A DNA stretch of 64,000 bases, taken from NCBI GenBank assembly GCA_950097015.1, contig CATNEN010000008.1:3162001-3226000 (forward strand), in the 5' to 3' direction. The position numbers and the translations under genes are program-made. The notes below the pieces were generated by a model, which made no database searches, was not told the DNA's origin, and saw only the letters and a program-made list of their open reading frames with translations. This document shows positions 7,332 to 62,706 of the stretch, in pieces (the first letter of the stretch is position 1; every line of letters begins with the position of its first letter). This stretch comes from Macrostomum hystrix. Lineage: Eukaryota > Animalia > Platyhelminthes.

Positions 7332-7965
7332 CCTGACGTCAAATACGTGCACCTTCCAAGGGCGACTAACCAGCTGCTCAGCACTCGTCTTCATCGCGAG
7401 TACGCTGGTCTTGTGCATTCTGATCATCGCTTTCATCTGTGGATTTCTGCTGGTTCGTTTTTTTTAACTTTTGCTCGGTGATTTTGTTTTACTGCTTCTG
7501 TTGGAGCAACTTTCAAGCCGATGTGTCCTCAAACATTTCAGCTCAAACTAAAGCCCAACTGTGCTCGACAAAGTCCCGACTACCGGCTGAAACGGCGAAT
7601 GCCATCAAGCAGGATCTCCCAAGCTCCAATTGCTATCAAGGCACCTGTAGTGCCTCAGGTAAATTTTGCAAGTTGTCAGTTCGTGTTGTCAAAGGTTGTC
7701 AAATTCGACGGGCATGCACCTTGATTATGACAATTACCTGAAAATGTAATTCTGTCAGATTTCTTTTGCAAAGCAAATGTTTTGTAAGCCAACCTGCCTA
7801 CCATACCATCAGCAGCAGGTGGAGGCAGAGCTGTTGCCCAGCAACCCAGGTGAGTCCGAATGCAGCTACATGTCGCTGAGTTTAAGTAAAGCAGCCCCCA
7901 ACAATGACCTGGAGGAGGACTGCGCCAGCGACTGCACCGTCTACATCGAAATTGTACGTGGCTGA
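5535..7965 (+). CDS. G2: F-type-lectin-like single-pass receptor with class B ITIM/ITSM-like tail
   Basis: Exons: 5535-5598 SP MSFTNSLIYFFLILLAKASDK; 5696-5938, 6109-6329 and 6474-6585 FTLD; 7361-7452 TM SALVFIASTLVLCILIIAFICGFLL; 7542-7658; about 7819-7965 tail ...SECSYMSL...SDCTVYIEIVRG*. All GT-AG, open frame. Confidence 0.85.
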
Positions 7966-9779
7966 TCTCAAGTCTGCTCTAATACGAGTCGAGACATTTG
8001 AGTTTAAAATTATTACAGTCGTTCTTACAAGCCAGATAGCATCAAGTTAAGACAGTTATTTCAGTCATGGCCGCAAACTGTGCCTGCCTACTCTTGCACT
8101 TTCAAGCTGTTTTGACATGCGTCAATACTCAATCGATTTTGTCTTAAAAAGTTAATACTCTTGATCTTCATCTATCCGCTGCATGAATTTTGTTAAAATC
8201 GAGATTTTATATTTGATAAACATTCTGTCAACATGTTGGGAATGTTTAATAATAATGAAAAACATATACACACTGGCTCCAGCATTCCTGGAACATATTT
8301 GCTGGTTTCACAATTCAAAATTTGAAACCTCCTAATTATAGACATGCAGCACACATGCCTCCAGGTATTCTTGGCTTTATTATTTAGAAGTCTGGAACGC
8401 CTGAAATAAATCAAGGTTGGTTCTGATGAATTTTGCTTTCACCAGATAAACCGGAAGCCATCACAGCAACAGTTGCAGGCGCTTGGTGCCATTCTCAAAT
8501 TCCAGCAGATTATGAACATGTATAAACACGATGTGTGGATTATTACTAAATGTATTGCAATAATTTGACCTAAGTCACGTTATAAACTTTTGGCATTGCT
8601 TAACGTAAACTGCACGACAAGCCGCCAAACCTTCTCCCCGCTGCTGCGTCCAAAATTAATGTGCCCCGCCGCAGAATAGAGCTCAAGGACCATCATGCGA
8701 GAGGCAAACCCGTTAGTCCGCTTCTCCACTCACCCCCTCGACATAGACTTGCAAAAGATGGAAAGTTTTTCTAAAACATTTTCTCTTCAGGTGAGTTTCC
8801 CATTCGCCAGGGTCGAGTGCTGAGTTCGTGGCAGTCATGGGACTTGACGGCCAGCTCTGCTTCCATAACAAGTCGAGTTACTCAGAGAACGCAGACTCAA
8901 ACAGCGTAAGGTTCAGCTTGAGATTTTTTCACAGCTCTAACAGCAGCCAAGTAGATGGTGGATTTCACTGGTTCGGAGTGCAGCTGAATGAGTCACTGTG
9001 AAGGGCAGAGAAGGTAGGCAGTAAAGTGCAGAATATGCAAGTAGGTCTACGTACACCGCTTCAACTCACTGCCGTCACATTTCAGAAGGCAGAGCGGAAG
9101 GCATTGAGATCTGGGCATCAGACAGCCGTGAAATATTTTCAGGCCATCACTGCAGATCGAGCAACATTAGCAGACAGTTTGAGGAGTCTCGGTTGCTATG
9201 GAGACGGTGCGGCACTACACAGAGAGAACATCAGGAAATTTTGGCTGGTGAAGTCTTCACTGTGGAATGCACCGCTAGTGTGAGAGCTTTAATAAAGTAC
9301 TCGCCTATTCACACACCGCATATACCAGCTGAAATTATGGAATTCGTTGAATAACCCGCAGGTCCGCCAGCTGCTACTCCGCAAGGACGTCACCCGAGCT
9401 AATGCTAACAGCTTCCTGGAATTCGCGGATCTCAGACTTCAGACATTGCAACTAAGTAAAGCTCTTATTTCACTTACGAAATGAGGCCTTAACAGTAGAT
9501 CACACAATTTTAAATGGTATTTCAAATACCCACAGATCACTTCACGATGGCCACAAAACCGAATGAAAATCCACCATCTGGATCAAACTTTTCCGCTCTA
9601 TACGATGAACTAACTTTCAAAGCCGTCCGAGTCAAAAAGAAAAAAACTACCAGTAACAACATAATCAATACAATATTGGCAACAATAATAGCAGGCATGG
9701 TTAAATTGTTAAATGTTGAAATTTTGTGAGCAGAAAAATTATGCCTAATTGCCGCTTGTATTTGTGTCGGACTTGGCAC

Positions 9780-10690: not shown

Positions 10691-10959
10691 CCAGGGAACT
10701 GTTGACTAATATGAATTTCACCTGTCATCCGACAAATTTCACAGGATGACGAAAGCGGTCTGATTCGGTGCAGACAAAATTTGATTCTATAGAAAAATTT
10801 AATCCAAGCAAACGATGACAAATAGTTGTAGATGAGACAAACAGCTGCTTCATTTAATTGTGTACATTGAATTGGAAAATACACTTCACCCTGTTTCTGT
10901 TTCTTCAAAATCTGTGATTCCATAGAAAAATCTCCCAAGCATAAAGAGCTGCTTATATA

Positions 10960-11741: not shown

Positions 11742-12099
11742 CAATTGAGTTTCTTGAGCAACCATTTAGACGCCGCCCTTGACTTGCTAAAATATGTTTT
11801 GAATGAAACATTTTCCAGCGAACTAAAATAAAAAAAATTGTTTGTTTTTGTTTCAGTAACAATCATTTCTAACTATATACGAGCGTATTAGATCTATTTT
11901 AAAAAAGCTGGTTGACAGCTGCAAACTGTCTATCCCGGGTCTAGCTTGTCTCTAATTTTAGTTAGGTGAGTAATCAAAAAATTTATCAAAAATTTATTTA
12001 AAATATATATTTGTATTTGAAACGTATAAAACAGGTAGAATATAAAATGTTCTTTTTTGCAAGGAAGCATGACATTTTTTTATTAATATAACAGCAAGT

Positions 12100-13098: not shown

Positions 13099-13099
13099 A

Positions 13100-14588: not shown

Positions 14589-16296
14589 CCCAGAGACCGA
14601 GCTAACCACTGAACCCCGAGCTCACTGGAATCGGATACAGAGTTGGAGTAGTTGGATTATCATACAAGCTGGTCAAAATATTTTTTTCAGCGGCCTCCGC
14701 GGATCAGGCTGTCGCCGTCAACTCGAATTTCACTGTGATATGCGAGCTGCACTGCAGCAGCTCACAGCTGTGCTCAAACTCAAGCGGGCTCCAGCTCGGC
14801 CTTCCGAACGGTACCTGCATTGCAGAACACAATATAGCAGTGGCTCGAGCACTCCCTGAGCACTCTGGAAATTACTCTTGCTGCCTCGGCTCTGTGCAGA
14901 CGCAGACCCCAGTCACCGTGCTGTGAGTGAGCATCCAGAATTTTTCTGTTATTTACTCCTCAAAACAAATATTTCAGCAGCAATTTATGACAGCACTTCA
15001 AAATTTTGCAGCTGACGGCTCTGAACCTTTCTATTGCAGCTCCGAGTGCCGTCAACTGAGCCTTCAGCAGCCGGGCTCAGCCTGAGCTCAGGCATTCAGG
15101 ACAAATCTAAAGTGTCACCTGATGTGTTTCGTCCTGTCATTGAGGTGAGTCAATGAGTCACTTAGACTTCAGCGAACAAACAGGGACTGTCCTGTCCAAG
15201 AAAAATGCCACGTTGCTTATTCATAAATCTCACTTTTAATGGTCACTTGTCAGCATTTTTTTTAGTTTTTCTCCGAAACTGAATGAGTGCTCAAGGCTGC
15301 TCTGATTTCAGACAACCAGCGGCTTCGAGTCCGAGTTCTGCTACTTGACTGTGTGCAAACCAGCGACTGCTGCTGCTGCTGCTGCTGCTGCGGGGGGGGC
15401 AGGACACAGACAGCGACTGCTGCACCGAGTACATTGAGATTGTTGCTGTGGGCGACTGAGAGTTTCGTGATCAGCCAGAGATGGGTTTGAGACTGCTTGC
15501 AGTGCAGCTATTCCGCATAAATGTTTATTGTTAACATATATCTTACTATATTTTATATTACTAGTTACTTATGACTATTATTATTAGTTACTATTATACT
15601 GCATATATTTCTATCGATTATTAATGACAATAGGGCATACTGATGACAGATATTTGGGCATACCTTTGCAATGCATTAAGGCGCAGCCCTTATTGAATTA
15701 TTCGATCATTATGCGAGACCTTGGTTGTCTGCTGCCTTCCCAAACACCTGATTAATTAGTTAGATCCCGAATTTCTCCTGTCCTCCCCCAGATAGGGAAG
15801 TAATTGCGAGTTAACATGACTGAAACTTTTTATAACACGTCAACGGCTACCAGGGTCGTTACCATTTTTATGCTCTCTCAGTCCGCATCACAAGCTTAAA
15901 TTTACAAGCTATTTATAGTTTTTATGTACGAAGTGCTCATTCAGGTACTGACGACAGAAAAGTTTTGAAAATATTTATTACTCAAGGAGAAGGCAGGCCA
16001 CATTGCTGGTCTTGCCTTGTGGGAAATTATTTAAAAACAATATTTACTTGCTCGGCTTTTTAACACTTTTATTCTGCATCTATTCCAGTTTTCTGTGTAT
16101 GAAACTCATCATGCAATTGTCCCTTATTTCGCTGCTTGTGGATACTGTAGAGTGTAGACAAATATATTGTGTAATACAATAGAAAACATTGTTTGATTTA
16201 TAACACAAGTATCTGGACAGTTGTGGCATAAACTTTTAATGATTGTTTAGTAATGAACCACCTTAGCCATATTGGCTTCACTCTACCGCTATCTCC

Positions 16297-17571: not shown

Positions 17572-20500
17572 ATGCCGACATTGCCGTTGATTCTCCTTCT
17601 GCTGGGATCTGTGTGTGCCGGAGCTGCTGCAGACTGTGAGTCTATTCTCAGATGGGGATTACTGGAGTACTAACCAGCTGGTAAAAACTAAAAACCCCAA
17701 CGAACATTCAGGTGAGTTCCCGATCCGCAGAAGCCGCGTGCTGAGCTCCTGGCAATCATCATTTTATGATAGGCCCACCTGCTTCTACAACAGAAGCCAT
17801 GAAGATGAGGAAAACACTGTGAGAAATACTGCTTCCAGCTACAGGTTCTTCCACAGCGCCGATAAGAGCCGAGCAGACGGAGGATTTCATTGGTTCGCAG
17901 TGCAGCTGAATGAGTCAGTGCTCATCAGATCGGTCACTGTGAAGGGCAGAGAGGGTGAGTTGCTGTCACTGGCTGTCGCTCTGTGCAAGCTGGCTGCACG
18001 GACAGCTCTCCCATTGCAGATGGTGCAGCTGACACTTACTTAAGAGCCGTGGGCATCGAGATCTGGACCTCCAACAGCACCAGCGCTTTGTTCTCGGGAG
18101 AGCACTGCAGCTCAAGGAACATGAACACACAGTTCAATGGAACGCGGGACAAGTGGAGCCGGTGCGGTACGACAGTGAATAAAACAGCGATTGCACCTGG
18201 CGAGAACTTCACCGTCAGCTGTGCTGCTGAGGCAAGTAGAAATGGGTAAACTGCATTGTGTTCTGGTCTTTTGTTGGTTCAGATTTCGTAATGATGATGA
18301 CTTTGATGAAAGTAATGTTTGATGAAAAATTTTCTACAATATATTTTTTGTTTTCTTTCTGTTTAGGTGCCCGTTAAAACTCATTCGGCCTAATAAAATA
18401 TTCTAAAGCCCAACTGAAGGGTCAAGTCTTTGCTTCATTGTTTGTTGAATTTCTCATTTGGCCCCTTTGTGTGTGCATTTTTACCTTTAAAGTGACATGA
18501 ATGCTTGTCTTGCACGTCAATATATGCCGGAAAAAAACTGTCAATTCAGCAAGAACAAAATCGTTGCTCGAAAGCCCTCCCTTCAAAATCCCTCCCTACA
18601 AAAGCCCTCCCTTCAAAATCCCTCCATTCAAAAGCCCTCCCTACAAAATCCCTCCCTACAAAAGCCCTCCCTTCAAAAGCCCTCCCTTCAAAATCCCTCC
18701 CTACAAATTCCCTCCCTACAAATGCCCTCCCTTCAAAAGCCCTCCCTTCAAAAGCCCTCCCTTCAAAAGCTCTCCCTACAAAAGCCCTCCCTTCAAAAGC
18801 CCTCCCTTAAAAAGCCCTCCCTTCAAAATCCCTCCCTACAAAAGCCCTCCCTACAAAAGCCCTCCCTACAAAAGCGGTCCCTTCAAAATCCCTCCCTTCA
18901 AAATCCCTCCCTACAAAAGCCCTCCCTACAAAAGCCCTCCCTACAAAAGTCCTCCCTTCAAAAGCGCTCCCTATGGGTCCCATTTTTATTTTTAGCCAAT
19001 AAAGTTGTCCAGCGCAATTAAACATTCTTTACTTTTCAAGGTTCGCCACTTGATTCTCAGGCGAATCGCAACTGATGCCCTGGTTGGGGATCACATGAGT
19101 TTCGCTGATCTCATTCTGAACACGGTAAAGCTGGGTGAGTAATACTTTGAATCCTGAGCAGTCTAATGAGACTCCAAATCAGATATCTTTCTGGTAAACC
19201 TAGTTTTAATGAGTGAATGGTTGCTAGGAGACGCTTAACAGTGGAAAGACCAAGCTGACCAAACCAATAAATTAAAAAATATATTTTTTACGCTATTTTA
19301 CAAGACCACGGGGGAATATCAAATACCCACTGCCTACTTCACGATTTGCTCCCAATCCGAATGCCCGATTTTTCGTGAAAGTCCACCATCTGGATCAAAA
19401 TTTACGATGAAATAAGATAATTCTGAACTATAATCAAGCATTCCAACTATGGGCCTCAGGGCAGTGGCTTTTTTATCTAGCTTTAAGTATGCTTTCTATG
19501 AAGTCCACAAAAATTTCTGTTAATTCTGTGCTGTCCTGTGTCACTAAATACACAATTTTGTCATCAGCTGTTAGGCTTTCGAAAATACGAACAATACCTG
19601 CCACTTTCTCTATGTATTTATTTCTAATTGGAACATAAACGGACCAATCGCATCTAAAGAGAATACGAATTTCGTTCTCTACCTCGACTCTACATTTTGG
19701 ACATGTTCTGTTTTCACACGCGATTTTCGGTCTTACAGTGCGCAATGTCACACTGGCCAGTTTGTGGTCTCCTAGACGAAATCGGGACATTGTGCGCCTT
19801 TGTTCTGGATCTCTGGAGAAATCTTTCTTTAACGTGTAATAGAAGTGGCTGAGCTTGGCTGACTTTCCCATCCTCTGAGTCCAGTGCCTTCGGAACTCTG
19901 ACTCAAAGTTCTCCCTGTGCGTTTTGATGGACTTTGTTTTTCTAGTCTGTTGACAATTCCGCATTACTTCACTAGTCATTTTTCCCCGATGCCAACATCG
20001 CTGTATTCTGTATCTGCCACCAATTTCGCGATGATGGAGTCTGGTCGGCTCCGAACTGAGGACCAGTATTGAAGGCTTCTTTTTTGAATACTATATAATA
20101 GTGGTAGTCTTCCTAATTCGGACCGAGCACCATTGCTGTCAGTGTTTGGACTGTCCGATCTATAAGGTTCCGATCCCAAGTACCCAGTTTCCAGGAGACA
20201 AAAGCTCCCCAGGCCTCTGATGCATAGATCAGAGTCAATGCATTTCTACTGTAAACACAGCCAGCAATTACTCAACTGGAACTGTGCATTCCAGAGCTCT
20301 CAGCGCCTGGCATTGTGACAGGAGACTCCGCCGTCAACGTGAGCTGCTCGCTGAGCTGTCCGAGATCTGGTCTGGTGCAGCTGTGCAGTCCTAGCGGGAA
20401 CTGCTCAACTGCTCAATCAACGGTCACCGCCCTTGCGGATCGTGTAGACTCTGGGAAGTACACCTGCAATTATAGCTCAATTAGCAAGTCAGCAACTGTG

Positions 20501-26500: not shown

Positions 26501-29500
26501 AGTGTCTATGCAATTGGATTGAGTTAGCTTTGATACTGTCTATGCAATTGGATTGAGTTAGCTTTGATAGTGTCTATGCAATTGGATTGAGTTAGCTTTG
26601 ATAGTGTCTATGCAATTGGATTGAGTTAGCTTTGATAGTGTCTATGCAATTGGATTGAGTTAGCTTTGATACTGTCTATGCAATTGGATTGAGTTAGCTT
26701 TGATAGTGTCAATGCAATTGGATTGAGTTAGCTTTGATAGTGTCTATGCAATTGGATTGAGTTAGCTTTGATAGTGTCTATGCAATTGGATTGAGTTAGC
26801 TTTGATACTGTCTATGCAATTGGATTGAGTTAGCTTTGATACTGTCTATGCAATTGGATTGAGTTAGCTTTGATACTGTCTATGCAATTGGATTGAGTTA
26901 GCTTATTTAGTGTCTAAGCAATGCGATAAGTTTTCAATCCAAGAAGTGAGAGCTAAAATAGTCGAGACTGAAAGCCGCAGTGCTTCAACAGAGCTCTTCC
27001 CGCTCCCTACAACCGCAGGAGTCGCGAGTCCTCAGCTGGTGGCCGAGAGCTCCAGCTTCTCTGTGAGCTGCGAGCTGCACTGCAATGTCACCGATTTGAG
27101 CACAGACTCAGGCCAGATGCGGATCTGCTCTTCAGATGGCAGGTGTTCAGAAAATCAAACGCTGCTGATTAGCAAAGCGCAGCCTGTCCATTCTGGAAAG
27201 TACACTTGCAGACTCGGCTCCAGTGACCGCAGTCTGTCGACCACAGTCTCCGTGCTCTGTGAGTTTCCCAATGACCCCAGATCCTCTGACAAGCTGCTGA
27301 AAGTATCAAGGAATATAGATTCTCAGGTAGAAATATTGCAGTGCACCTGTCGGCTAATCTTGTAAACGTAAAAAACATTTCAGCGTCTTCTCCAAGCCAA
27401 GTGGTCGCGATGAACTCCGAGCTCTCTGTGAGCTGCTGGCTGCACTGCAACAGCTCGGAGCAATGCCCGAACTCAGGTGACCTTCAGTTGATCCTGCCAA
27501 ACGGTAGCCACGTGTCGGGCAAGAATCTGAGGATTGTCCGTGCGCAGCCAGGTAACGCAGGTGAATACACCTGCGCTGCTGGGAATGTCACGAAGCGGAC
27601 CGCTGTGGCTTTGCTGTGTGAGTCTCGACTTCTGCGAGTTCATCTGGCTCTGCTTTTCTTAACACTAAATGATTAGTATGATCAAATGATACGTCAGATT
27701 TTGAGCCCGGAGTTCTGTGCGCGAGTACATGGATAATTACGTAGATATCCTAACTTAGTCTTCAACCAAAATGTTTTGAGAAGTGCCCATGAGAAGGCCA
27801 ATTTTGGAAATGCGAATGCTAATTTAAAAACCAAAGCGATCAATCCCATGTACTTATGAGTGGCTGTGAGCCATTGTTGTGACGCTTTTGATTGATAGAA
27901 TCCTCATTCACAAGCCATATCCCATCAACTGCAGCCGCAACACCTGACCAAGTGGTCGCGCATGGTTCAAAGCTCTCTGTGAACTGCTCACTGCTCTACC
28001 CTGACTCCAAGGCTTTCCATGAGCCGCAGGTCTGTCTTCCGAACGGCAGCTGCACCAGAAAAGCGTCTGTGGAAATTTTGAGCTCAACTCCTCAGGACGC
28101 TGGAGTCTACAAGTGCAAGCTGAACTCAACAGAAGTGGAGTCGGTTGTCACTGTGCTGTGTGAGTCTCACATCCATTCTCAGCTTCCTTGAGCACGGATA
28201 CTCAGTTTTGACTAACAGCTCTTTCGTTGCAGCATCGACTCCAGACTTGACTGTGGTGGCAAACACAAGCTTCACAGTTGAATGCTCATTGCACTGCGGC
28301 TCTGAGAGCTGCAGAGTGCAGGGGCAAGTTCAGCTCTGCTTTCCTAACGGCAGCTGCTCGGAGACTGGAGAAAATCGCAGGCTAGTAGAGATTCTCAGAG
28401 CACAGCCTCAGCACTCAGGCAACTACACTTGCAGAGCCGGATCTGCTGCCAAGTCAGCATCGGTCACCGTGATTTGTAAGAAAATTGGCTATAAATTTTA
28501 CATGCTAGAATGAACAATACGGTATGCACAGCCAGTCCTTCGGGTACGTACTTCATGTGGTCTAATACTTCCCGACAACATTCCACACTCATAGCAGTGC
28601 TTGATACGCATCTAGTTAGAGCTTGTAGACCTGCAGTTAGAGCATCGGACTCCTGACCAAGAGGTCCGAAGTTCGAATCTCAACCCATGAGATATCATAT
28701 GTGCCCTTGATTCCCCAATTCGGTTCACCCAGCTGTCAAATCGGTACCAGAATTAGCTGGGATAGAAATTTAGGATCGTGTGATGGCCCCCCGTCCACGG
28801 ACTGAACAGTTGTACACAGCCTCTCGCCTCGCTGCCAAGTCGTAGCTATAGCTGTGACTTGTGCCATAGACAGTACACATTGCCCAGCTGTGCTAGGTGT
28901 CACATCTCTCCGTGTAAAACTAACAGTAAAAGCGAAGCGCCTCGGACCTCCCTGCAGACCCGCCGACAAACGTGTCAGTCACGCTGCTGAATTCGCACAA
29001 TTGCACCATTGTGTCAGACATCATCGTCAGCTTTAGCTCCTCAGAATCTCACCCGCTACCTGAGCACAGGTGCCATGCAGTAGGTGGTGGAGTCATTAAA
29101 CAATCCACACTGCTATCAACTGTGAGTTTTGACTTCATTCTATGAGCAATATTGAATTGTGAGCACGCAATGGAATGCAAAATTTTCTAGCTTTTCGAAA
29201 TTTCAGAACACCAGCGAGAACGGCTCAAGAGTTAGTCTGTGGCGTCTTGTTAGTGTTGGAGATCGCTGGCTGGATGCAAGCAGGGGTACAGTTCATTGCG
29301 CTGCTGCTCACAATGGATCGACCACCAGCCCATTCAGCTACGTCTCAGAAAATAGTGCCAGTTGGACTTGCGGCAAATCAAAAGGTACTGGTAGATCGCA
29401 GAGCAGTGCTTCTCTTCTCGCGGCTCTGGGAGGAATCAGTGCTGCGACATTGGTGGCTGCGCTGGTCATCTTCCTGACAACAACACTGGTTAGTGATGCA

Positions 29501-30742
29501 AGCCTGTAATATCGTGTCTATTAAGGACCACTGGGAGTTAAACGACGAAAAAAATAGTTTTTTTAGTTTTGGAGACACGGAAAACATTGAGACGGGAAAT
29601 TTTCACAGTCTTTGTTTACTGAAAGCAGATCCAATGAATCGTACACAATATGTTATTCCTGGAAAGTTGATTTTCAAACAGTTTTCTTTACAAGGTCTAA
29701 GCGTACAAAAATAAATAAGTTGTAAGACAAGAGTCTAGAGATTGCATTCAGAATATTATAAATTTATAAATTTGCCAGCTCACTGATCAGAGAATGGAGA
29801 AAACAAAAAGCTTGTTATCGAGTAGTTTTGTTATTTTAAGAGCTCTTTAGACATGCTTAAATGCTTGTTAACTGTACCGTAAGCACTACTCACAAACTTT
29901 TAGCGCAAGGCAAGATCCACCCAGCCGACTGTTGAGACTCTGAGTCTGAAGTCCCTGCCCTTAGCCAGCTGCGATATGGACTCGGATTTACCTACGGTTG
30001 CTCCTTCGGTGAGTTGCGTAATTAGCGCGGTAGTTCGGTCATTTAAGCGGTGACTGGCAGAGAGGTAACACGTCTGACACTTGCACAAATGTCCCTCACA
30101 ATTTAGGCCCTTGTGGCCCTTGTACAACCTTTAATAATTTTTAATAACTGCAGGCTACATGGTTTGCTGACACTAGACCTGCAGACAGCGAGGAGGCAAT
30201 TCTGCCCATACACATACACGTTCCGTATGCAGGCACACGCTCACACAGGTGTGTACATCTGCCCTGGCTTTCTCATCGTCAGGCAGTGTACACTCTCACT
30301 GTGCCTTGGAAGTTGGCCCTCAAGCGCGTAAATTGCACGACAAGCCCCCAAGCCTTCTCTCCACAGCAGCGCCCCAAATTAAAATGTGGCCTCGCCGCGG
30401 AATCGAGCTCAGGGACCTTGGTGCGAGAGGCAAACTCGTTAGACCCACAGCCAACTATACTTAGTGAGAGGTGTACAGTGCCTGACGATGAGAAAGTCAG
30501 GGCAGATGTACACACCCTGTGTGTGTGCACAGGGTTGTCACAGGGATCTGTGCATGTGAATTGTCGCATATATTTAAAAGTGCCAGATTTCAATCCAGGT
30601 GAGCTACTTCAGCTACAATGAGCCGGAGTGCAACTACTTGACGGTGGCTCCGTCGGCGGCTGCTCGGGCTGGTGCTGTGCAGAGCCAGGACTCGGACAGC
30701 GACTGCACCGAGTATACCGAAATAGCTACTGACGGGATCTGA
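17572..30742 (+). CDS. G4: large receptor SP-FTLD-Ig-FTLD-4Ig-FTLD-4Ig-proximal domain-TM-class B tail
   Basis: SP 17572-17635 MPTLPLILLLLGSVCAGAAAD; FTLD1 17712-17954, 18020-18231 (GC donor AG|GCAAGT), 19041-19134; Ig 20295-20510; FTLD2 20997-21236, 21333-21544, 21610-21721; Ig 22390-22626, 22717-22959, 23032-23259, 24318-24551; FTLD3 24672-24914, 25339-25556, 25628-25724; Ig 27019-27258, 27384-27617, 27935-28159, 28233-28475; proximal 28958-29121; TM exon 29207-29488; 29904-30008; tail 30599-30742 ...PECNYLTV...DSDCTEYTEIATDGI*. No disruption seen. Confidence 0.85.
18570..18975. repeat. 15-bp array AAAGCCCTCCCT(T/A)CA
   Basis: Lies in the G4 intron 18232-19040. Confidence 0.95.
19473..20230 (-). 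mobile_element. Non-LTR retrotransposon (LINE) 3' ORF2 fragment
   Basis: SRFRLGDHKL...RTCPKCRVEVENEIRILFRC, a C-terminal Cys/His-type knuckle of LINE ORF2. Related copies at 1-225, 4600-5240 and 42330-42520. Confidence 0.7.
21737..22367. repeat. 49-bp array with shorter deletion variants
   Basis: Unit GAGTTCATTCGGCAGGTTTTGGAGATGCAGCAGGGAACTGGCATTGCAT. Confidence 0.95.
23262..24322. repeat. 81-bp array, about 13 units, each containing the splice acceptor of the next Ig exon
   Basis: Each unit contains CCAATATTTCAG|CTTC, matching the real acceptor at 24317/24318. Confidence 0.95.
25772..26908. repeat. 34-bp array GAGTTAGCTTTGATAGTGTCTATGCAATTGGATT
   Basis: Direct tandem units. Confidence 0.95.
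28620..28900 (+). mobile_element. tRNA-headed SINE family 3 with CACCCAGCTGT..AAT.GGTACC core (related 32945-33110, 56030-56175, 52250-52320)
   Basis: GTTAGAGCATCGGAC...GAAGTTCGAATCT head. The core resembles the conserved central domains of Nin/Meta-type SINEs (recalled from memory, not searched). Confidence 0.5.
30175..30590. mobile_element. Two SINE family 1 copies in opposite orientation
   Basis: Minus copy 30175-30455 abuts a plus-strand body fragment 30460-30590; both contain the CCTGAC/GTCAGG hairpin segment. Confidence 0.65.
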
Positions 30743-31540
30743 GACTGGGAAAGCCGGAGTGTTCTAGACTCCTTCGCTAGCATGACGATAAACTGTAGTT
30801 AATTATAGTGTCATATATATTCCGTCTCAGCGCTCAAACAATAGGCCGAATATTTTAGTAAATCATTTATTTCTAGTTCTGTTCTTTTCGAACAAAGGCG
30901 CGTGTATCCAAGACAAAACGGGGATGTATGTTCATTATCGAATTTTTTTCACTGAGTCACTCGTTTAACTCTAGTAAATATTTAGCACTTTTAAACAGTT
31001 TTCTGCTGGAGTTTTTGGTTTTCAAGACACCTTGATTCAATCAATACAATGGCACACAGTAAATGAGTCATGCATGACCCTGATTAATAAACTCTCTATG
31101 CACCATCCGATTTGTTAATGTGTCTGTCGTCGGCAACATAAGAAGACGTTTAGCAACAGAAAGATCATTAATAGACTTTGCAAGCTGTTTTCGTCACATC
31201 AATCAGGACCTTAGACATGCCTAGTACATAGTTAGGCTTGCAGGCTAAATCAGTACATCCACACGGACTTGTTTACGCAGTCGCATAGACAAAAGCAAAG
31301 GCCATATTACTCGAATAAAGAGAAACTGCTAATTTAATGTCGTTGGAATTAAATTGAGCTTCTTTCAATCTTATTCTTGATCTTATTTTTATGCGAAACT
31401 TAATATAGAACTGGCACAGGTGATCGCTCACAGCTAAAACTGACAGGTGCGAATATAAAGGCGAAAAATAATTTGTCTAAAATGCATAGCAGAGAGGGAG
31501 ATCAATTTGTAAGGTCTGGAGTAACTGATCACCAAAATTC

Positions 31541-46500: not shown

Positions 46501-46978
46501 CTGAGACTTCCCGAACCCTGAGATTTCCTAAACTCGATAAATCAAAAAAGCAAAACTAAAATTATTCTCTAGATGCTACATTACACACAATACTCATTTT
46601 TCAAAATCAATCTCTAGCTAAAGCCTAGAACAGCCAGGACCTCAACTGCTGAAGTAAACCTGGTCGATATGCAGCCGAGTACCTGTGCAGCTCCTGTGTC
46701 GTCTACAGATCCCGCCAAAGCAGTGCTCAATGAGGAGCCAGTAAGTGTTGCTTCTAAATATTGTTGTGAACTTTATTCTACTTTTAGTAGAATATAAAGT
46801 GACACCTATCTGAACCAGCAATACCTGGTGCTTTCAGGCGCACAGTTACTTTCGCTGTAACACTCCCGAGTGCACCTACATGTCTGTGATTCCTGGCCCA
46901 ATGGCCGCAACAGATTCTCCAATAGATCCGCACAGCGACAGCACCCTGTTTATTGAAATTGTAGCCGATCGAGACTAA
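31541..46978 (+). CDS. G5: large receptor SP-FTLD-Ig-FTLD-11Ig-proximal domain-TM-class B tail (two apparent +1 frameshifts)
   Basis: SP 31541-31610 MSKVRLALFLLLSVLCTPSSQLD; FTLD1 32006-32248, 33151-33371, 33453-33537; Ig 34495-34735; FTLD2 34826-35053, 35167-35375, 36435-36525; Ig 36606-36844, 37491-37733, 37807-38034, 39006-39251, 39346-39579, 40201-40443, 40535-40759, 40835-41071, 41213-41455, 41529-41756, 42574-42813; proximal 42987-43156; TM exon about 43214-43492 (acceptor uncertain); 46618-46740; tail 46838-46978 ...PECTYMSV...HSDSTLFIEIVADRD*. Extra bases near 34728 and 36654 may be real lesions or assembly errors. Confidence 0.75.
32310..32616. mobile_element. MITE-like insertion with a 12-bp flanking direct repeat and an internal 17-bp GC-rich array
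   Basis: GGTTGTAGCCTA at 32310-32321 and 32605-32616; ends AGTGGCGTAG...CTAGGCCCCT; (GGGGGCGCCACTCCCAC)n at about 32366-32520. Confidence 0.5.
32616..32942 (-). mobile_element. tRNA-derived SINE family 1, most complete copy
   Basis: On the minus strand: A-box-like TGGCCGAGTGG and B-box-like GAGTTCGATTCC head, a body with the hairpin TGTACACTGCCTGAC-GATGAGAAA-GTCAGGGCAGATGTACA, and a (TAT)n-like tail. Other copies at 8601-8731, 30175-30455, 30460-30590, 31845-31985, 35455-35795, 49690-49810 and 58755-59030. Confidence 0.7.
33595..34377. repeat. 23-24-bp array GAAACCTGGG(G/A)TTGCAGGGAGAC..
   Basis: Direct tandem units with variants. Confidence 0.95.
35455..35795 (-). mobile_element. SINE family 1 copy
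   Basis: Aligns by eye with 32616-32942. Confidence 0.7.
36920..37330. repeat. Adjacent 21-bp (GGATGGATACAATGACGTTTG) and 30-bp (CATGGACAAGCTGCATACAG..) arrays
   Basis: About 36920-37050 and 37095-37330. Confidence 0.92.
37447..38095 (+). repeat. Two-Ig-exon cassette duplicated almost exactly at 41169-41820
   Basis: Identical translated ORFs (37530- vs 41252-; 37827+ vs 41549+); both copies are followed by the GAGTTGGGGATCGGC repeat. Confidence 0.92.
38083..38915. repeat. 15-bp array GAGTTGGGGATCGGC (also at 37365-37447 and 41808-42140)
   Basis: Direct tandem units; three separate blocks in G5 introns. Confidence 0.95.
39600..40165. repeat. Degenerate array built on AAGCAGTCTTTGTTT..TTGACTCAGT
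   Basis: Recurrent motif with variable spacing. Confidence 0.85.
41169..41820 (+). repeat. Second copy of the two-Ig-exon cassette (partner 37447-38095)
   Basis: Sequence identity seen directly, including the intron between the two exons. Confidence 0.92.
43565..46490. repeat. 16-bp array CCTGAACCTGACACTT (~2.9 kb)
   Basis: Fills the intron after the G5 TM exon. Confidence 0.97.
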
Positions 46979-48321: not shown

Positions 48322-48755
48322 GAGGAGAGGAGAGGAGAGGAGAGGAGAGGAGAGGAGAGGAGAGGAGAGGAGAGGAGAGGAGAGGAGAGGAGAGGAGAGG
48401 AGAGGAGAGGAGAGGAGAGGAGAGGAGAGGAGAGGAGAGGAGAGGAGAGGAGAGGAGAGGAGAGGAGAGGAGAGGAGAGGAGAGGAGAGGAGAGGAGAGG
48501 AGAGGAGAGAAGAGGAGAGAAGAGGAGAGAAGAGGAGAGGAGAGGAGAGTTCGTGAGTTCGTGAGTTCGTGAGTTCGTGAGTTCGTGAGTGAGTAAGTGA
48601 GTGAGTGAGTGAGTGAGTGAGTGAGTGAGTAAGTGAGTGAGTGAGTGAGTGAGTGAGTGAGTGAGTGAGTGAGTAAGTGAGTGAGTGAGTGAGTGAGTGA
48701 GTGAGTGAGTGAGTGAGTGAGTGAGTGAGTGAGTGAGTGAGTGAGTGAGTGAGTA
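48322..48755. repeat. Compound microsatellite (AGAGG)n-(GTTCGTGA)n-(GTGA)n
   Basis: Seen directly; the (GTGA)n tract recurs at 57408-57876. Confidence 0.95.
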
Positions 48756-51288
48756 AGCCAAATTGATTTCAGAACTGCTTTTCGAATTTCAGGTGATGTG
48801 CTGATTCGCAACCACAGCTTGAGCGGCGCCTGGCAGTCGTCTCACGGTTATGGACAGAGTTGTTTTTAAACGCGAGCTTCTGAAAGAGAGAAAAATGAAA
48901 CGGAATCGAAATTCAAATTATTCATCCACAGCAATGACAGCCGGTATGCAGTGGGAGGATTCCACTGGTTCGCAGTGCAGCTGAAGAAACAGGCTCTCAT
49001 CAGATCGGTCACTGTGAAGGGCACAAGTGAGTCTCTGATTTTGAGTATACTCTCGTGGATGCTGCTGCACTAAAAGCAGTCTGAGACGACAAAAGCAATT
49101 GAAGCAGGTATTCTACCGTGAAGCGTCAAGTGCTAAACTTTCATTCTAAAATTGCAATTCAGGTAGCACAGCAACGCTCGGCAGGTCAGCCGGAATCGAG
49201 ATTTGGACATCGAGCTCAAGCCAGCAGCTGCTCTCTGGAGACCACTGCTTCTCAAAAGCCATCAGCAGGCAGTTTGAGCAGCACCTGAGCAGCTGGAGCC
49301 TCTGCGGCACCACTGCGAACAAGCCGAGCATCTCACCTGCTGAGAAATTTCAAGTGGACTGCGTGGCTGAGGTGAGTTCATGCAGCAGACTCAAGTACTT
49401 TGATCAGCTCGAGACTCAGTGACAGAGATGTGAATTTCAGGTGCGATACCTGCTGCTCAGAAGAAACTGCTCATTCAACTTCAGTGCGGGCGACAATGGC
49501 TACCTGCACATTGCGGATCTGTCTTTGCAAACAATAAAGCTAGGTGAGGTTGAAGTCTCGTTCGTTTTTGCATTTTTACATTTCACAGGACAGTAGCATG
49601 ACTGTTCTTAAACTGCAAAGCTTTTCTGGTCTTTGATTTCCTTTTTCTGTCGTATAAACTAAAGCTTTTGGGGAGAGTGGCGGTAACGCATCTGACAATT
49701 GTAATAAAGTCATGAGCTCGAACCTTCGGCGAGGCCACATTAAGCGAGAATTCATGACACCATGTTCAAACACAAGGCACAGTGAGAGTGTACACTTGCC
49801 CAAGGCCCTCCGCTAATTACTATTCATATTACTCTGCGTATTGCGACAACATTTCCTCGGCTTGTCCCCGAACTGCCGACACCATTCCCAATCTCTTCAG
49901 CGCTATCAGCTGAGCGGGTGGTGGCAGTGAACACTTCATTTTCGGTGAACTGCTCACTGCTCTGCATGGACTCCGGCCTGAGCATAAACTTGAGCAGGCC
50001 GCAGCTCTGCTTTCCAAACGGCAGCTGCACCAATGAACTCCAGCTGCTGATCGGCAGTGCTCAGCCCTCGCACTCGGGAAACTACGCCTGCAGGCTGGGC
50101 TCCGTTGAAGACTCAAGCTCCGTCTCCGTGCTGTGTGAGCTCTTGGTGAATGGTTTAGCGTCCGTGTCTGGCTTTAGTTAATTACCTAGATTACCTTGAA
50201 TTCAATGCTGCGAGAGTGAAAAGTTGAGTTCATGATGTTTGCAGATCCACCATCAAGAGTGGCAGTCTCATTTGACAGCTGTCAGAGCCTGTCAGATGTG
50301 ATGGTGCAGTTCAGCTCATCTGCAGCTCAGCCGGTGCCTGAGCACAGGTGCAGCGCTCATTTCAGTTGCACTGGAGCTTCGGTCAATCTCACCTTCCTGT
50401 CACAGGTGAGATTCCTTGCTCATTATTCCACTTGCCGTCGTGCGTCACCTTTAAGTGCCACTTATGAGCATGCGAGGAGACGATTTTCTGAGCATTGCAT
50501 CGCTCCCTAGCACACTCACACACGCCCCAGCACACAGGCATGAACTGAACAATGAACTGGACACCCACAGCGGCACTGACATATTGTTAGACGATGTACA
50601 TACTCTGCGAGACTCTGGACTTTCCACTCATTAGCTCAGATGGGACCCCCAAACAAAGACTGTCTTGAATTCGTATGCATCATTAGCTCAGATGGGACCC
50701 CCAAACAAAGACTGTCTTGAATTCTTATGCATCATTAGCTCAGATGGGACCCCCAAACAAAGACTGTCTTGAATTCGTATGCATCATTAGCTCAGATGGG
50801 ACCCCCAAACAAAGACTGTCTTGAATTCGTATGCATCATTAGCTCAGATGGGACCCCCAAACAAAGACTGTCTTGAATTCGTATGCAGGGACCATGTTCC
50901 GATAGTCGTGTGTGTAACCGCTCCGCCACTTCACTCCGCCAGAACTCGGCGGACAAAGACTTGATCAGCAGGTGGACATTCGGCAGAGAAGCCTCGGAGA
51001 TGCAGCAGTGCAATGCCAGTGCGCTGGTGCTGAAGTGCAGCGCAGTGCAGACTCTGCCCGAGGGGATCAGCTTCCAGTCGGTGCACACGGATGAGAGGAT
51101 GTGGGAGTGCAGTCTGAGCACAGGCCGTCACTATGCCGTTCATGCCATCATCGTGAGCACAGTTGTGTGCTCAATTCTGGCGGTACTCATACTCGGGAGT
51201 GTTCTGCGATTCCTAACAACTCAGGTTTGTGAGCTGCTTTCCTAGAATTCAGCAAGTCTGTGAAATCTAAGTTAACTCGAATAAAATT
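48590..51288 (+). repeat. Direct segmental duplication copy 1 (partner ~57740-60396)
   Basis: Near-identical exons and introns from the (GTGA)n tract to about 65 nt past the TM exon; the ORF track has matching pairs (50232/59444, 50883/59991). Confidence 0.92.
50630..50885. repeat. 52-bp array ending at the TM-exon acceptor (fewer units at 59840-59993)
   Basis: Unit CATTAGCTCAGATGGGACCCCCAAACAAAGACTGTCTTGAATTCGTATGCAT; the last unit ends GTATGCAG|. Confidence 0.92.
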
Positions 51289-51356
51289 GAGAATATGAGA
51301 TTATTTGGCCAAGAGCTATTGGCTCAAGGAATGAAATTTGGTGACACAATGTGTTT

Positions 51357-57311: not shown

Positions 57312-60300
57312 ATGACAGCTGCTGCACTGATCATCCTGCTGACTGCCTCCCACTGCCTCTGCACCTGCCTGTGCGACTGTGAGTAAGGGAGAAGAGCAAA
57401 AAGAGAAGAGTGAGTGAGTGAGTGAGTGAGTGAGTGAGTGAGTGAGTGAGTGAGTGAGTGAGTGAGTGAGTGAGTGAGTGAGTGAGTGAGTATGTGAGTG
57501 AGCGAGTGAGTGAGTGAGTGAGTGAGTGAGTGAGTGAGTGAGTCAGCGAGTGAATGTGTAAGTGAGTGAGTGAGTGAGTGAGTGAGTGAGTAAGTGAGTG
57601 AATGTGTAAGTGAGTGAGTGAGTGAGTGAGTGAGTGAGTGAGTGAGTGAGTGAGTGAGTGGGTGAGTGAGTGAGTAAGTGAGTGAGTGAGTGAGTGAGTG
57701 AGTAAGTGAGTGAATGTGTAAGTGAGTGAGTGAGTGAGTGAGTGAGTGAGTGAGTGAGTGAGTGAGTGAGTGAGTGAGTGAGTGAGTGAGTAAGTGAGTG
57801 AGTGAGTGAGTGAGTGAGTGAGTGAGTGAGTGAGTGAGTGAGTGAGTGAGTGAGTGAGTGAGTGAGTGAGTGAGTAAGCCATATTGATTTCAGAACTGCT
57901 TTTCGAATTTCAGGTGATGTGCTGATTCGCAACCACAGCTTGAGCGGTGCCTGGCAGTCGTCTCACGGTTATGGACAGAGTTGTTTTCAAACGCGAGCTT
58001 CTGAAAGAGAGAAAAATGAAACGGAATCGAAATTCAAATTATTCATCCACAGCAATGACAGCCGGTATGCAGTGGGAGGATTCCACTGGTTCGCAGTGCA
58101 GCTGAAGAAACAGGCTCTCATCAGATCGGTCACTGTGAAGGGCACAAGTGAGTCTCTGATTTTGAGTATACTCTCGTGGATGCTGCTGCACTAAAAGCAG
58201 TCTGAGACGACAAAAGCAATAGAAGCAGGTATTCTACCGTGAAGCGTCAAGTGCTAAACTGTCATTCTAAAATTGCAATTCAGGTAGCACAGCAACGCTC
58301 GGCAGGTCAGCCGGAATCGAGATTTGGACATCGAGCTCAAGCCAGCAGCTGCTCTCTGGAGACCACTGCTTCTCAAAAGACAGCAGCAGGCAGTTTGAGC
58401 AGCACCTGAGCAGCTGGAGCCTCTGCGGCACCACTGCGAACAAGCCGAGCATCTCACCTGCTGAGAAATTTCAAGTGGACTGCGTGGCTGAGGTGAGTTC
58501 ATGCAGCAGACTCAAGTACTTTGATCAGCTCGAGACTCAGTGACAGAGATGTGAATTTCAGGTGCGATACCTGCTGCTCAGAAGAAACTGCTCATTCAAC
58601 TTCAGTGCGGGCGACAATGGCTACCTGCACATTGCGGATCTGTCTTTGCAAACTATGAAGCCAGGTGAGGTTGAAGTTAACAGAGTTTTCTGCGTTTTTA
58701 ATTTCTGGTCTTTGATTTCCTTTTTCTGTCGTATAAACTAAAGCTTTTGGGGAGAGTGGCGGTAACGCATCTGACAATTGTAATAAAGTCATGAGCTCGA
58801 ACCTTCGGCGAGGCCACATTCAGCGAGAATTCATGACACCGTGTTCAAACACAAGGCACAGTGAGAGTGTACACTGCCTGACGAGGAGAAAGTCAGAGCA
58901 GATGTACACACTTGCATGAGTGTGTGCCTGCGTACGGTATCTGTGTGCGTGTGTGCTCAGGAGTCTCCTCGCTGGTTGCGGGTCTTCAGTCACCAAAGGA
59001 TGTGCCATTGCCCAAGGCCCTCCGCTAGTTATTATTCATATTACTCTGCGTATTGCGACAACATTTCCTCGGCTTGTCCCCGAACTGCCGACACCATTCC
59101 CAATCTCTTCAGCGCTATCAGCTGAGCGGGTGGTGGCAGTGAACACTTCATTTTCGCTGAACTGCTCACTGCTCTGCTTGGACTCCGGCCTGAGCACAAA
59201 CTTGAGCAGGCCACAGCTCTGCTTTCCAAACGGCAGCTGCACCAATGAACTCCAGCTGCTGATCGGCAGTGCTCAGCCCTCGCACTCGGGAAACTACTCC
59301 TGCAGGCTGGGCTCCGTTGAAGACTCAAGCTCCGTCTCCGTGCTGTGTGAGCTCTTGTTGAATGGTTTAGCGTCCGTGTCTGGCTTTAGTTGATTGCCTA
59401 GATTACCTTGAATTCAATGCTGCGAGAGTGAAAAGTTGAGTTCATGATGTTTGCAGATCCACCATCAAGAGTGGCAGTCTCATTTGACAGCTGTCAGAGC
59501 CTGTCAGATGTGATGGTGCAGTTCAGCTCATCTGCAGCTCAGCCGGTGCCTGAGCACAGGTGCAGCGCTCATTTCAGTTGCACTGGAGCTTCGGTCAATC
59601 TCACCTTCCTGTCACAGGTGAGATTCCTTGCTCATTATTCTACTTGCTGTCGTGCATCACCTTTAAGTGCCACTTTTGAGCATGCGAGGAGACGATTTTC
59701 TGAGCATTGCATCGCTCCCTAGCACACTCACACACGCCCCAGCACACAGGCATGAACTGAACAATGAACTGGACACCCACAGCGGCACTGACATATTGTT
59801 AGACGATGTACATACTCTGCGAGACTCTGGACTTTCCACTCATTAGCTCAGATGGGACCCCCAAACAAAGACTGTCTTGAATTCGTATGCATCATTAGCT
59901 CAGATGGGACCCCCAAACAAAGACTGTCTTGAATTCGTATGCATCATTAGCTCAGATGGGACCCCCAAACAAAGACTGTCTTGAATTCGTATGCAGGGAC
60001 CATGTTCCGATAATCGTGTGTGTAACCGCTCCGCCACTTCACTCCGCCAGAACTCGGCGGACAAAGACTTGATCAGCAGGTGGACATTCGGCAGAGAAGC
60101 CTCGGAGATGCGGCAGTGCAATGCCAGTGCGCTGGTGCTGAAGTGCAGCGCAGTGCAGACTCTGCCCGAGGGGATCAGCTTCCAGTCGGTGCACACGGAT
60201 GAGAGGATGTGGGAGTGCAGTCTGAGCACAGACCGTCACTATGCCGTTCATGCCATCATCGTGAGCACAGTTGTGTGCTCAATTCTGGCGGTACTCATAC

Positions 60301-62706
60301 TCGGGAGTGTTCTGCGATTCCTAACTACTCAGGTTTGTGAGCTGCTTTCCTAGAATTCAGCAAGTCTGTGAAATCTAAGTTAACTCGAATAAAATTGAGC
60401 TTGAGCTTGGCTTTTTTATTAAATCCGACATAAATCAGAATCTAAGAAAAAGTGTCTTAGAGGAACACAAGGTGAATAAAAATTGAAGCATGTTGAATTT
60501 GTTTAAGAAACGAATAAGTTCCTTATCTGTTTATCACATTAAGAAACGCAACAGACCGGGACCCGCCGCTGCTGCTGCTGCCACTTTTGAAAGCTTGCAC
60601 ACTGCTGCTGAAACTGCACAAGCTGCTGAAGATGAAATTTCTAACAGTCCCGCCTCTGGCGTAAGTGATCAGTTTTGGTGCCACGACTCGAAGAAATTGC
60701 ACTTCAGCAAGCTTGCTTTTTTAATTAGTAATGCTCTGTGTTCAATTAATTCCTTCACTGATGGGATAGACTAGCAATCCATTCTGTTCCTTCACTGATG
60801 GGATAGACTAGCAATCCATTCTGTTCCTTCAATGATGGGATAGACTAGCAATTCATTCTGTTCCTTCACCCATGGGATAGACAAGCAATCCATTCTGTTC
60901 CTTCACTGATGGGATAGACTAGCAATCCATTCTGTTCCTTCACCCATGGGATAGACTAGCAATCCATTCTGTTCCTTCACTGATGGGATAGACTAGCAAT
61001 CCATTCTGTTCCTTCACCCATGGGATAGACTAGCAATCCATTCTGTTCCTTCACTCATGGGATAGACTAGCAATCCATTCTGTTCCTTCACTGATGGGAT
61101 AGACTAGCAATCCATTCTGTTCCTTCACTGATGGGATAGACTAGCAATCCATTCTGTTCCTTCACCCATGGGATAGACTAGCAATCCGTTCTGTTCCTTC
61201 ACTGATGGGATAGACTAGCAATCCATTCTGTTCCTTCACTGATGGCATAGACTAGCAATCCATTCTGTTCCTTCACCCATGGGATAGACTAGCAATCCAT
61301 TCTGTTCCTTCACTGATGGGATAGACTAGCAATCCATTCTGTTCCTTCACTGATGGGATAGACTAGCAATCCATTCTGTTCCTTCACTCATGGGATAGAC
61401 TAGCAATCCATTCTGTTCCTTCACCCATGGGATAGACAAGCAATCCATTCTGTTCCTTCACTGATGGGATAGACTAGCAATCCATTCTGTTCCTTCACTG
61501 ATGGGATAGACTAGCAATCCATTCTGTTCCTTCACCCATGGGATAGACTAGCAATCCATTCTGTTCCTTCACCCATGGGATAGACTAGCAATCCATTCTG
61601 TTCCTTCACCCATGGGATAGACTAGCAATCCATTCTGTTCCTTCACTGATGGGATAGACTAGCAATCCATTCTGTTCCTTCACCCATGGGATAGACTAGC
61701 AATCCATTCTGTTCCTTCACTCATGGGATAGACTAGCAATCCATTCTGTTCCTTCACTGATGGGATAGACTAGCAATCCATTCTGTTCCTTCACCCATGG
61801 GATAGACTAGCAATCCATTCTGTTCCTTCACTGATGGGATAGACTAGCAATCCATTCTGTTCCTTCACTGATGGGATAGACTAGCAATCCATTCTGTTCC
61901 TTCACCCATGGGATAGACTAGCAATCCGTTCTGTTCCTTCACCCATGGGATAGACTAGCAATCCATTCTGTTCCTTCACCCATGGGATAGACTAGCAATC
62001 CATTCTGTTCCTTCACTCATGGGATAGACTAGCAATCCATTCTGTTCCTTCACCCATGGGATAGACAAGCAATCCATTCTGTTCCTTCACTGATGGCATA
62101 GCTTAGCAATCCATTCTGTTCCTTCACTGATGGGATAGACTAGCAATCCATTCTGTTCCTTCACCCATGGGATAGACTAGCAATCCATTCTGTTCCTTCA
62201 CCCATGGGATAGACTAGCAATCCATTCTGTTCCTTCACTGATGGGATAGACTAGCAATCCATTCTGTTCCTTCACTGATGGGATAGACTAGCAATCCATT
62301 CTGTTCCTTCACCCATAGGATAGACTAGCAATCCATTCTGTTCCTTCACCCATGGGATAGACTAGCAATCCATTCAGTTCCTTCACTCATGGGATAGACT
62401 AGCAATCCATTCTGTTCCTTCACTCATGGGATAGACTAGCAATCCATTCTGTTCCTTCACTGATGGGATAGACTAGCAATCCATTCTGTTCCTTCACTGA
62501 TGGGATAGACTAGCAATCCATTCGCGAACATCCGCCTGTTGCTCTGGCAGGCTGTCGGAGTGTCGCAGGCGGAATGCTGCTATGATTCGCTGATGCCTTC
62601 GACCTCCTACTCAGCCTCGGTGCTGATGAAGGCTGGCGCCGACGATCTGTGGGAGTCAGAGAGCGACTGCACGGTGTACTTGGAAATCGTTGCTGACAGG
62701 ATCTGA
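57312..62706 (+). CDS. G7: SP-FTLD-Ig-proximal-TM receptor with class B ITIM/ITSM-like tail
   Basis: SP 57312-57378 MTAAALIILLTASHCLCTCLCD; FTLD 57914-58147, 58284-58492, 58562-58664; Ig 59113-59346; proximal 59457-59617; TM exon 59997-60332 (HAIIVSTVVCSILAVLILGSVL); cytoplasmic exon about 60544-60660 (acceptor uncertain); tail 62551-62706 ...AECCYDSL...ESDCTVYLEIVADRI*. Confidence 0.8.
57740..60396 (+). repeat. Direct segmental duplication copy 2 (partner ~48590-51288)
   Basis: As for copy 1. Differs by a longer SINE remnant and a different copy number of the 52-bp repeat. Confidence 0.92.
58755..59030 (+). mobile_element. SINE family 1 copy (its duplicate at 49690-49810 lacks ~120 nt)
   Basis: Shares CGGCGAGGCCACATT and the hairpin segment. 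Confidence 0.6.
60745..62522. repeat. 37-bp array TTCCTTCACTGATGGGATAGACTAGCAATCCATTCTG
   Basis: Fills the last intron of G7. Confidence 0.97.

Follow-up and report, generated by a model that had tools for sequence, protein, structure and literature searches.

The stretch analysed here, referred to below as the window, comprises 64,000 nucleotides of the genome of the flatworm Macrostomum hystrix (assembly GCA_950097015.1, contig CATNEN010000008.1; C8:3162001-3226000 in a genome of 220 Mb in 42 contigs). It holds a tandem cluster of intron-rich genes, G1 to G7, with minisatellites crowding the introns. The exons of these genes follow a common order, in which a two-exon N-terminal domain is followed by a variable number of immunoglobulin (Ig)-like exons of about 80 codons, a stalk exon, a membrane-proximal/transmembrane exon and cytoplasmic exons. 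Five of the genes end in a tail exon, of a type termed class B, that encodes two short tyrosine-centered motifs, one proximal and one distal to the membrane, and this tail is the subject of the analysis. It is a genuine signalling module of short linear motifs, maintained by selection and, by its predicted topology, cytoplasmic.

An initial annotation of the window, made without database searches, had quoted ten hexapeptides for these motifs, and all ten are found, on the + strand, in five terminal exons. The tail exon of G2, with its stop, spans 7819..7965, with CSYMSL at 7861-7878 and TVYIEI at 7936-7953; three in-frame tandem acceptors allow a start at 7813, 7816 or 7819. The coding part of the G4 tail exon, again with its stop, spans 30599..30742, with CNYLTV at 30629-30646 and TEYTEI at 30707-30724, and its 3' untranslated region runs beyond 30900. 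The G5 exon (46838..46978, stop included) carries CTYMSV at 46871-46888 and TLFIEI at 46943-46960, the latter a natural Tyr-to-Phe variant, and the G7 exon (62551..62706, stop included, with an alternative acceptor at 62569) carries CCYDSL at 62575-62592 and TVYLEI at 62671-62688. The encoded tail forms the last 46-51 residues of the protein, and in the five window tails the stop comes 3-5 residues after the distal motif. Between the two tyrosine positions lie 23-31 residues in G2, G4, G5 and G7, as first described. Both motifs were also said to share one terminal exon, and this holds, except that in G3 they sit in two different frames: the frameshifted exon at 15312..15459 has FCYLTV at 15336-15353 and TEYIEI at 15424-15441. 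The paralogue L005, 266 kb away, is intact and nearly identical; relative to it, the (GCT)n/G-run of G3 is 7 nt longer and a TGC-to-TTC change (C-to-F) affects the position two before the Tyr (Y-2). Either G3 is decaying or the repeat was misassembled. The acidic D/E-S-D described ahead of the distal motif is more exactly a Ser that never varies, with Asp or Glu after it, and an acidic residue precedes that Ser in only three of the five window tails. At the DNA level the five terminal exons are poorly alignable, with 55% mean column identity, most of it at the motif codons.

For G4, the attachment of the tail to a membrane receptor can be read from RNA. Four RNA-contig runs of one study contain about one third of the words of 26930-30800, and the contigs map to G4 as GT..AG-joined pieces, which indicates spliced RNA. 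They cover Ig exons at 27019-27258, 27384-27617, 27935-28159 and 28233-28475, the last of which ends in phase 1, a stalk exon at 28958-29121, and the membrane-proximal/transmembrane exon at 29207..29488, whose GT..AG joints occur in the contigs of all four runs; all are on the + strand. Between the transmembrane and tail exons lies a juxtamembrane exon of 105 nt (29904..30008, 35 residues beginning RKARS) that the initial annotation had missed; its joints in RNA contigs run from 29487/8 to 29903/4 and from 30007/8 to 30598/9. When the G4 exons are joined, a step taken solely to read the frame (database searches used single exons or database proteins), a single open frame leads through the transmembrane segment, the basic RKARS, the 35 juxtamembrane residues and a 47-residue tail with both motifs. 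The tail is therefore a spliced cytoplasmic terminal exon, in frame in G4. Cytoplasmic topology is suggested by the basic residues that follow the transmembrane segment in G4 and by the signal peptide of P0014, a relative from Macrostomum lignano. By splice-site and phase analogy with G4, juxtamembrane exons of phase 0/0 are predicted on the + strand for G2 (7542..7658, 39 residues), G5 (46618..46740, 41 residues) and G7 (60544..60660, 39 residues). The four juxtamembrane exons of G2, G4, G5 and G7, of 35-41 residues, have no detectable similarity to one another, and against this background the conservation of the tail motifs stands out.

The motifs recur well beyond the window. A profile built from four tails found 18 further tail exons on contigs C8, C38, C39 and C5, and a broader profile matched about 28 in the whole genome, of which 23 were read. 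Upstream of the tail, same-strand exons of one family (lectin-like, Ig and stalk, at some loci also transmembrane) were present at all 15 loci inspected. The genome has 29 stalk exons; some 19-20 are paired with a class-B tail, and about nine, that of G6 among them, have no paired tail match. In an alignment of 11 tails, which average about 40% identity, C and Y of the proximal motif and S, T, E and I of the distal one never vary. The distal Tyr is present in 10 of these 11 (G5 has Phe) and in 22 of the 23 tail exons read. Each invariant residue is encoded by two to four synonymous codons (four for T, three for I), which places the constraint on the protein. The most divergent genes, on C5, have lectin exons only about 35-50% identical and keep both C-x-Y and T-x-Y-x-E-I-[VI]-[AS]-D. 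Conservation across paralogues had been proposed as a check on the motifs, and it shows both to be under selection at the amino-acid level, among diverged paralogues spread over four contigs as well as in a second species.

That second species is M. lignano. Searched against 1.84 billion representative proteins, the tail profile recovered M. lignano proteins and four repetitive, spurious matches (P0001 and P0008-P0010), and no relatives outside Macrostomum. A word-based search with the P0002 tail region and an alignment of the M. lignano C-termini gave no additional members. The M. lignano proteins bear automatic names only; the full-length P0002 and P0014 have a signal peptide, a lectin-like domain, a transmembrane segment and the tail, and resemble G2. 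All M. lignano tails keep the proximal C-x-Y-x-x-[VIL]. On the M. lignano contig NIVC01002544.1, a gene for a 1091-residue Pkinase/PK_Tyr protein (L046 1-1137) lies about 9 kb upstream of the G2-like P0014 gene.

The signalling toolkit that the initial annotation had assumed is encoded in the M. hystrix genome. Exon matches number 83 for SH2, 102 for PTP and 143 for tyrosine-kinase domains. On C1 (about 10,614,977-10,616,623, - strand), the order SH2-SH2-PTP occurs in a single open frame of 549 residues whose alignment to human PTPN11 is end to end (E 2e-107, query 12-535 versus chain 7-527) and which retains the FLxR arginines and the VHCSAGIGRTG catalytic loop, making it a homologue of SHP2. 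A second SHP-like gene, with introns, is found on C11. At least ten SH2 matches lie just upstream of a tyrosine-kinase match, including a tandem-SH2, Syk-like arrangement on C7. In this Syk/ZAP-70-like gene (C7:10945907-10952488, - strand) two SH2 domains share one open frame with the tyrosine-kinase domain downstream, so that an arm based on the immunoreceptor tyrosine-based activation motif (ITAM) may also exist in this flatworm. The class-B tail itself is not an ITAM, given that its Tyr-Tyr spacing of 24-32 is far from the required 6-12. On inspection of the aligned tails, Grb2 (YxN), p85 (YxxM), STAT (YxxQ) and PTB (NPxY) motifs and a conserved PDZ-binding C-terminus were absent as well.

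The five exons would then encode the C-termini of type I membrane receptors of a Macrostomum-restricted family, built from one or more galactose-binding-domain-like lectin heads, variable Ig-like domains, a stalk, a transmembrane segment, an unconserved juxtamembrane exon and the tail exon. In the reading favored here, tentatively and with somewhat less than even confidence, the tail signals through phosphotyrosine anchored on the invariant proximal Tyr, with SHP2 as the most likely effector and bivalent binding only in those copies that bear the distal Tyr. The proximal [E/D/N]-C-x-Y-x-x-[V/L/I/M] would most likely be phosphorylated by a genome-encoded, SH2-containing tyrosine kinase, and the phosphorylated motif would dock an SH2 effector, for which the best candidate is the encoded SHP2-type phosphatase, to give an inhibitory output. 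The C-terminal S-[D/E]-(C)-T-x-Y-x-E-I-V-A-D-G could serve as a second docking site, and a spacing of 24-32 residues would let tandem SH2 domains engage both sites in copies that keep the Tyr. Direct support exists for the sequence itself, for spliced G4 RNA, for conservation and spacing, and for effector genes in the genome; cytoplasmic topology, phosphorylation, binding of SH2 domains or of SHP2, and the inhibitory sign are inferred.

The fit to the known motif classes is partial. The inhibitory tyrosine-based motif of immunoreceptors (ITIM) has the consensus S/I/V/LxYxxI/V/L and the corresponding switch motif (ITSM) the consensus TxYxxV/I (PMC8631942, PMC7078208). The distal motif had been described as an exact ITSM, and T-x-Y-x-x-[V/I] does fit 10 of the 11 aligned tails, but it fails in G5 and in three of the five distinct M. 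lignano tails, where the Tyr is replaced by Phe. The proximal motif had been called ITIM-like; its Tyr occurs without exception in the 11 aligned tails and in those of M. lignano, and its +3 residue is V, L or I, except for Met in two C5 copies, but its Y-2 residue lies outside S/I/V/L. The Tyr-Tyr spacings in the 11 tails (24, 24, 24, 25, 26, 27, 28, 28, 28, 32 and 32) agree with two tyrosines about 25 residues apart in the Tyr-bearing tails, an arrangement that is lost in the Phe copies.

Several observations weigh against phosphotyrosine signalling of the ITIM/ITSM type. Every intact tail, whether from M. hystrix or M. lignano, carries Cys at Y-2, with Phe in the frameshifted G3, so that the proximal motif fails the ITIM consensus (PMC8631942). 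In the window, read in six frames, T.Y..[VI] occurs 14 times against 14.7 expected and the canonical ITIM pattern [SIVL].Y..[IVL] 139 times against 165 expected. The distal Tyr is not conserved across functional members, as an ITSM would require, given the Phe of G5 and of the M. lignano copies: three distinct M. lignano tails read TEFIEM, TEFIEI and TEFLEI, and two further genomic copies (L045 16097-16390 and L046 17708-17878) also have Phe. These Phe-bearing tails retain T(-2), E(+2), I/M(+3), V/L, A, D and G, with Lys for Glu in the L046 copy. The Tyr hydroxyl was therefore lost at least twice, in G5 and in M. lignano, while the constraint on the motif was kept, and the conserved function cannot depend strictly on phosphotyrosine; real weight has to be given to a phosphorylation-independent partner of the distal motif. 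Conservation also reaches positions +4 to +7 (V-A-D-G), which neither consensus explains, and RNA support among the window tails is confined to G4. SHP2 docking, the recruitment first proposed, is accordingly graded as plausible and partly supported, and the ITSM reading as weakened.

The consensus counts bear as well on the idea that the resemblance is functionless, a product of chance or a by-product of recent duplication. Each of the loose ITSM and ITIM consensuses, taken alone, is not significant in the window, and several C38 copies are near-identical recent duplicates, flanks included. The more specific pattern T.[YF].EI, however, occurs five times against 0.8 expected in the six frames. 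The family pair, defined as C-x-Y-x-x-[VLIM], 17-27 residues and T-x-[Y/F]-x-E-I within 15 residues of a stop, is found four times in the window and never in 100 Markov-1 simulations. Since the motifs also persist, with synonymous codon turnover, on other contigs, in paralogues whose tails are 29-40% identical, and in M. lignano, a functionless origin is extremely improbable.

A young subfamily, L006-L016 (C38:21.5-22.5 Mb, C38:16.16 Mb, C38:27.2 Mb, C39:11.6 Mb and C8:2.56 Mb), has tail exons that are near-identical, intron flanks included. In most of its copies the stop after VAVGD is gone, and the frame reads on for 4 to about 70 residues. In one copy, L021, an in-frame stop interrupts the proximal motif, and in another, L014, the Thr at -2 is Ala.

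The exchange of Tyr and Phe gives most substance to a different proposal, in which the distal motif is a dock that does not need phosphotyrosine. It could be an LC3-interacting region (LIR; also Atg8-interacting motif, AIM) or a ligand of a SAP-type SH2 domain that reads T(-2) and I(+3) in a 'three-pronged' manner. SAP binds T-x-Y-x-x-V/I independently of phosphotyrosine. On this proposal, the receptor would either be directed to an endolysosomal or LC3-associated compartment or send its signal from there, with the proximal Tyr as a YxxPhi sorting signal or a phosphotyrosine site. The exchange of Y and F in a motif that otherwise retains its T, E, I, V, A, D and G speaks for such a dock, and the invariant S-[D/E] and the T ahead of the aromatic residue match the flanks of LIRs. 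The LIR core is [W/F/Y]xx[L/I/V], as in optineurin 178-FVEI-181 with its upstream phospho-serines (PMC12368060). The pattern, with its upstream acidic or phosphorylatable residues, fits the distal motif of every tail, but the core is very degenerate, which makes the fit weak evidence. Invariance of T(-2) is not a usual requirement of LIRs, and 22 of the 23 M. hystrix tail exons read do retain the Tyr. Overall, a phosphorylation-independent dock is a serious contender but unlikely. A more specific version, in which T-x-[Y/F]-x-E-I-V-A-D-G as, for instance, a built-in Atg8/LC3 site or SAP-like SH2 ligand would wire a large lectin-receptor family to autophagy or LC3-associated uptake, tuned by phosphorylation of C-x-Y, is a long shot; no description of a lectin receptor family wired in this way by such a tail motif was found. 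Likeness to optineurin FVEI extends to the E at the second x, the upstream run of Ser, Thr and acidic residues and the tolerance of Y or F. Unlike the class-B tail, however, known LIRs are mostly in cytosolic adaptors, and the invariance of T(-2) and of V-A-D-G falls outside the LIR definition.

If both motifs were instead YxxPhi sorting signals for adaptor protein (AP) complexes, helped by an acidic/Ser cluster, as is typical of endocytic lectin receptors, SH2 signalling would not be needed. All proximal and all Tyr-bearing distal motifs fit YxxPhi, an acidic/Ser stretch lies ahead of the distal motif, and the ectodomain is predicted to have a carbohydrate-binding-module-like fold. Left unexplained by YxxPhi are the invariant C(-2), T(-2) and E(+2). 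The mu subunits of AP complexes are not known to take Phe instead of Tyr, whereas the F-forms remain conserved, and pure sorting is quite unlikely. Alternatively, the tail could be activating, in that a phosphorylated Y-x-E-I would bring in and switch on a Src-type kinase instead of a phosphatase. The optimum for Src-family SH2 domains is pYEEI; E(+2) and I(+3) are invariant in the distal motif, and the genome has many SH2-kinase genes. The +1 residue, however, is I, T or L rather than E, the F-variants are as problematic as for SHP2, and the spacing and T(-2) are a better fit to an ITIM/ITSM arrangement, so that an activating tail is decidedly improbable. Sorting alone and docking of a Src SH2 domain are thus the weaker rivals to phosphotyrosine signalling through the proximal Tyr.

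The extracellular part was approached by Pfam and by structure prediction. With single exons as queries, Pfam gave only sub-threshold Ig_2 matches for the Ig exons and no match for the lectin, stalk and transmembrane exons; for P0014, F5_F8_type_C was likewise sub-threshold (17.3 bits against a cut-off of 28.2). An AlphaFold2 model of the P0014 ectodomain (mean pLDDT 64.7, pTM 0.69) matches chains of CBM32, F5/8-C and fucolectin proteins (3cqo, 1k12) with Foldseek E-values of 1e-5 to 1e-3 and TM-scores of 0.45-0.67. Judging from this model, the head is probably galactose-binding-domain-like and glycan-binding; the label 'F-type lectin' specifically is not established.

The overall design recalls the CD33-related Siglecs, with a glycan-binding head (probable in the flatworm) on an Ig-domain stalk, a single transmembrane segment and a short tail. 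Siglec tails have an ITIM-type Tyr near the membrane and a TEYxE[IV]-type motif at the C-terminus, and the flatworm tails have the same order of motifs. Both families are tandem-clustered and multigene, with a variable number of Ig domains and with pseudogenes. In contrast to Siglecs, the flatworm head probably has a galactose-binding-domain-like (F5/8-C, CBM32, F-lectin) fold and not a V-set Ig fold, and some flatworm genes appear to have two or three lectin heads. The Cys at Y-2 and the frequent Phe for the distal Tyr in M. lignano also set the flatworm tails apart, and no sequence homology to Siglecs was found, the profile search having recovered nothing beyond Macrostomum.

In PD-1 and BTLA, the two motifs are spaced by 25 residues, which may permit simultaneous, 1:1 binding of the tandem SH2 domains of SHP1 or SHP2 (PMC8631942, PMC7078208). 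The flatworm tails share the order of an ITIM-like and then an ITSM-shaped motif, have a comparable spacing (24-32 versus 25) and occur with a SHP2 homologue in the genome. The dominant site of PD-1 is its ITSM (PMC8631942), whereas in the flatworm tails the proximal Tyr is invariant and the distal Tyr is evolutionarily dispensable. Among invertebrates, Botryllus FcoR and amphioxus BbLcLRR are lineage-restricted, fast-expanding families with ITIM or ITIM-like tails and conserved SHP/Src/Syk toolkits (PMC12582321, PMC8211107). The Macrostomum family is similar as a lineage-restricted, expanding receptor family with ITIM-like tails; it differs in ectodomain and phylum, and the Botryllus and amphioxus families are described with expression, allelic or heterologous binding data, the flatworm family with sequence and one spliced transcript.

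The innate recognition receptors of flatworms are almost unknown, and none of the papers in the library searched combines 'ITIM' and 'flatworm'. If signalling through SHP2 is correct, Macrostomum has independently built a Siglec-like design of lectin head, Ig stalk and inhibitory tail, and ITIM-type inhibitory signalling would reach a genetically tractable spiralian, M. lignano. Invertebrate ITIM-type tails have already been described (PMC12582321, PMC8211107), and the chief interest lies in a Siglec-like architecture built on another lectin fold and in the natural alternation of Tyr and Phe. This alternation within a conserved ITSM-shaped motif amounts to an evolutionary experiment, which could reveal whether motifs of this kind also act without phosphorylation.

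The remaining observations concern the cluster itself. Long minisatellite arrays, with repeats 90-97% identical, fill most of the intron space (43565-46533, 60750-62523, 25771-26922, 23263-24324, 38084-38917 and others), and an array ends about 30-300 bp upstream of the tail exons of G5 and G7. In 17591-30742 (G4) and 31903-46978 (G5), pairs of lectin-like exons are repeated among the Ig exons within what appear to be single long genes, which places three lectin modules ahead of the G4 tail and two ahead of that of G5; RNA confirms only the last G4 module. G1 (1805-3645, - strand) and G2 (5482-7332, + strand) form a head-to-head inverted duplication, 96% identical, with the identity stopping within the transmembrane exon. 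The transmembrane segment of G1 differs from that of G2, and G1 has no class-B tail match in the window.

G6 is a 97-99% copy of the 5' part of G7 (48544-51291 versus 57661-60399) that ends just beyond the transmembrane exon. Its first lectin exon has an in-frame stop at 48867-48869, where G7 has Gln (57988-57990). G6 is also without a copy of the G7 juxtamembrane exon and without a match to the tail profile, and it looks more like a truncated pseudogene than like a paired gene with another tail. Finally, the last intron of G4 contains a short repeat (30122-30520), with a related copy at 35501-35779, for which RNA-contig depth is in the thousands and chimeric joints are many; it is probably a highly expressed element, either dispersed or like a short interspersed element (SINE).

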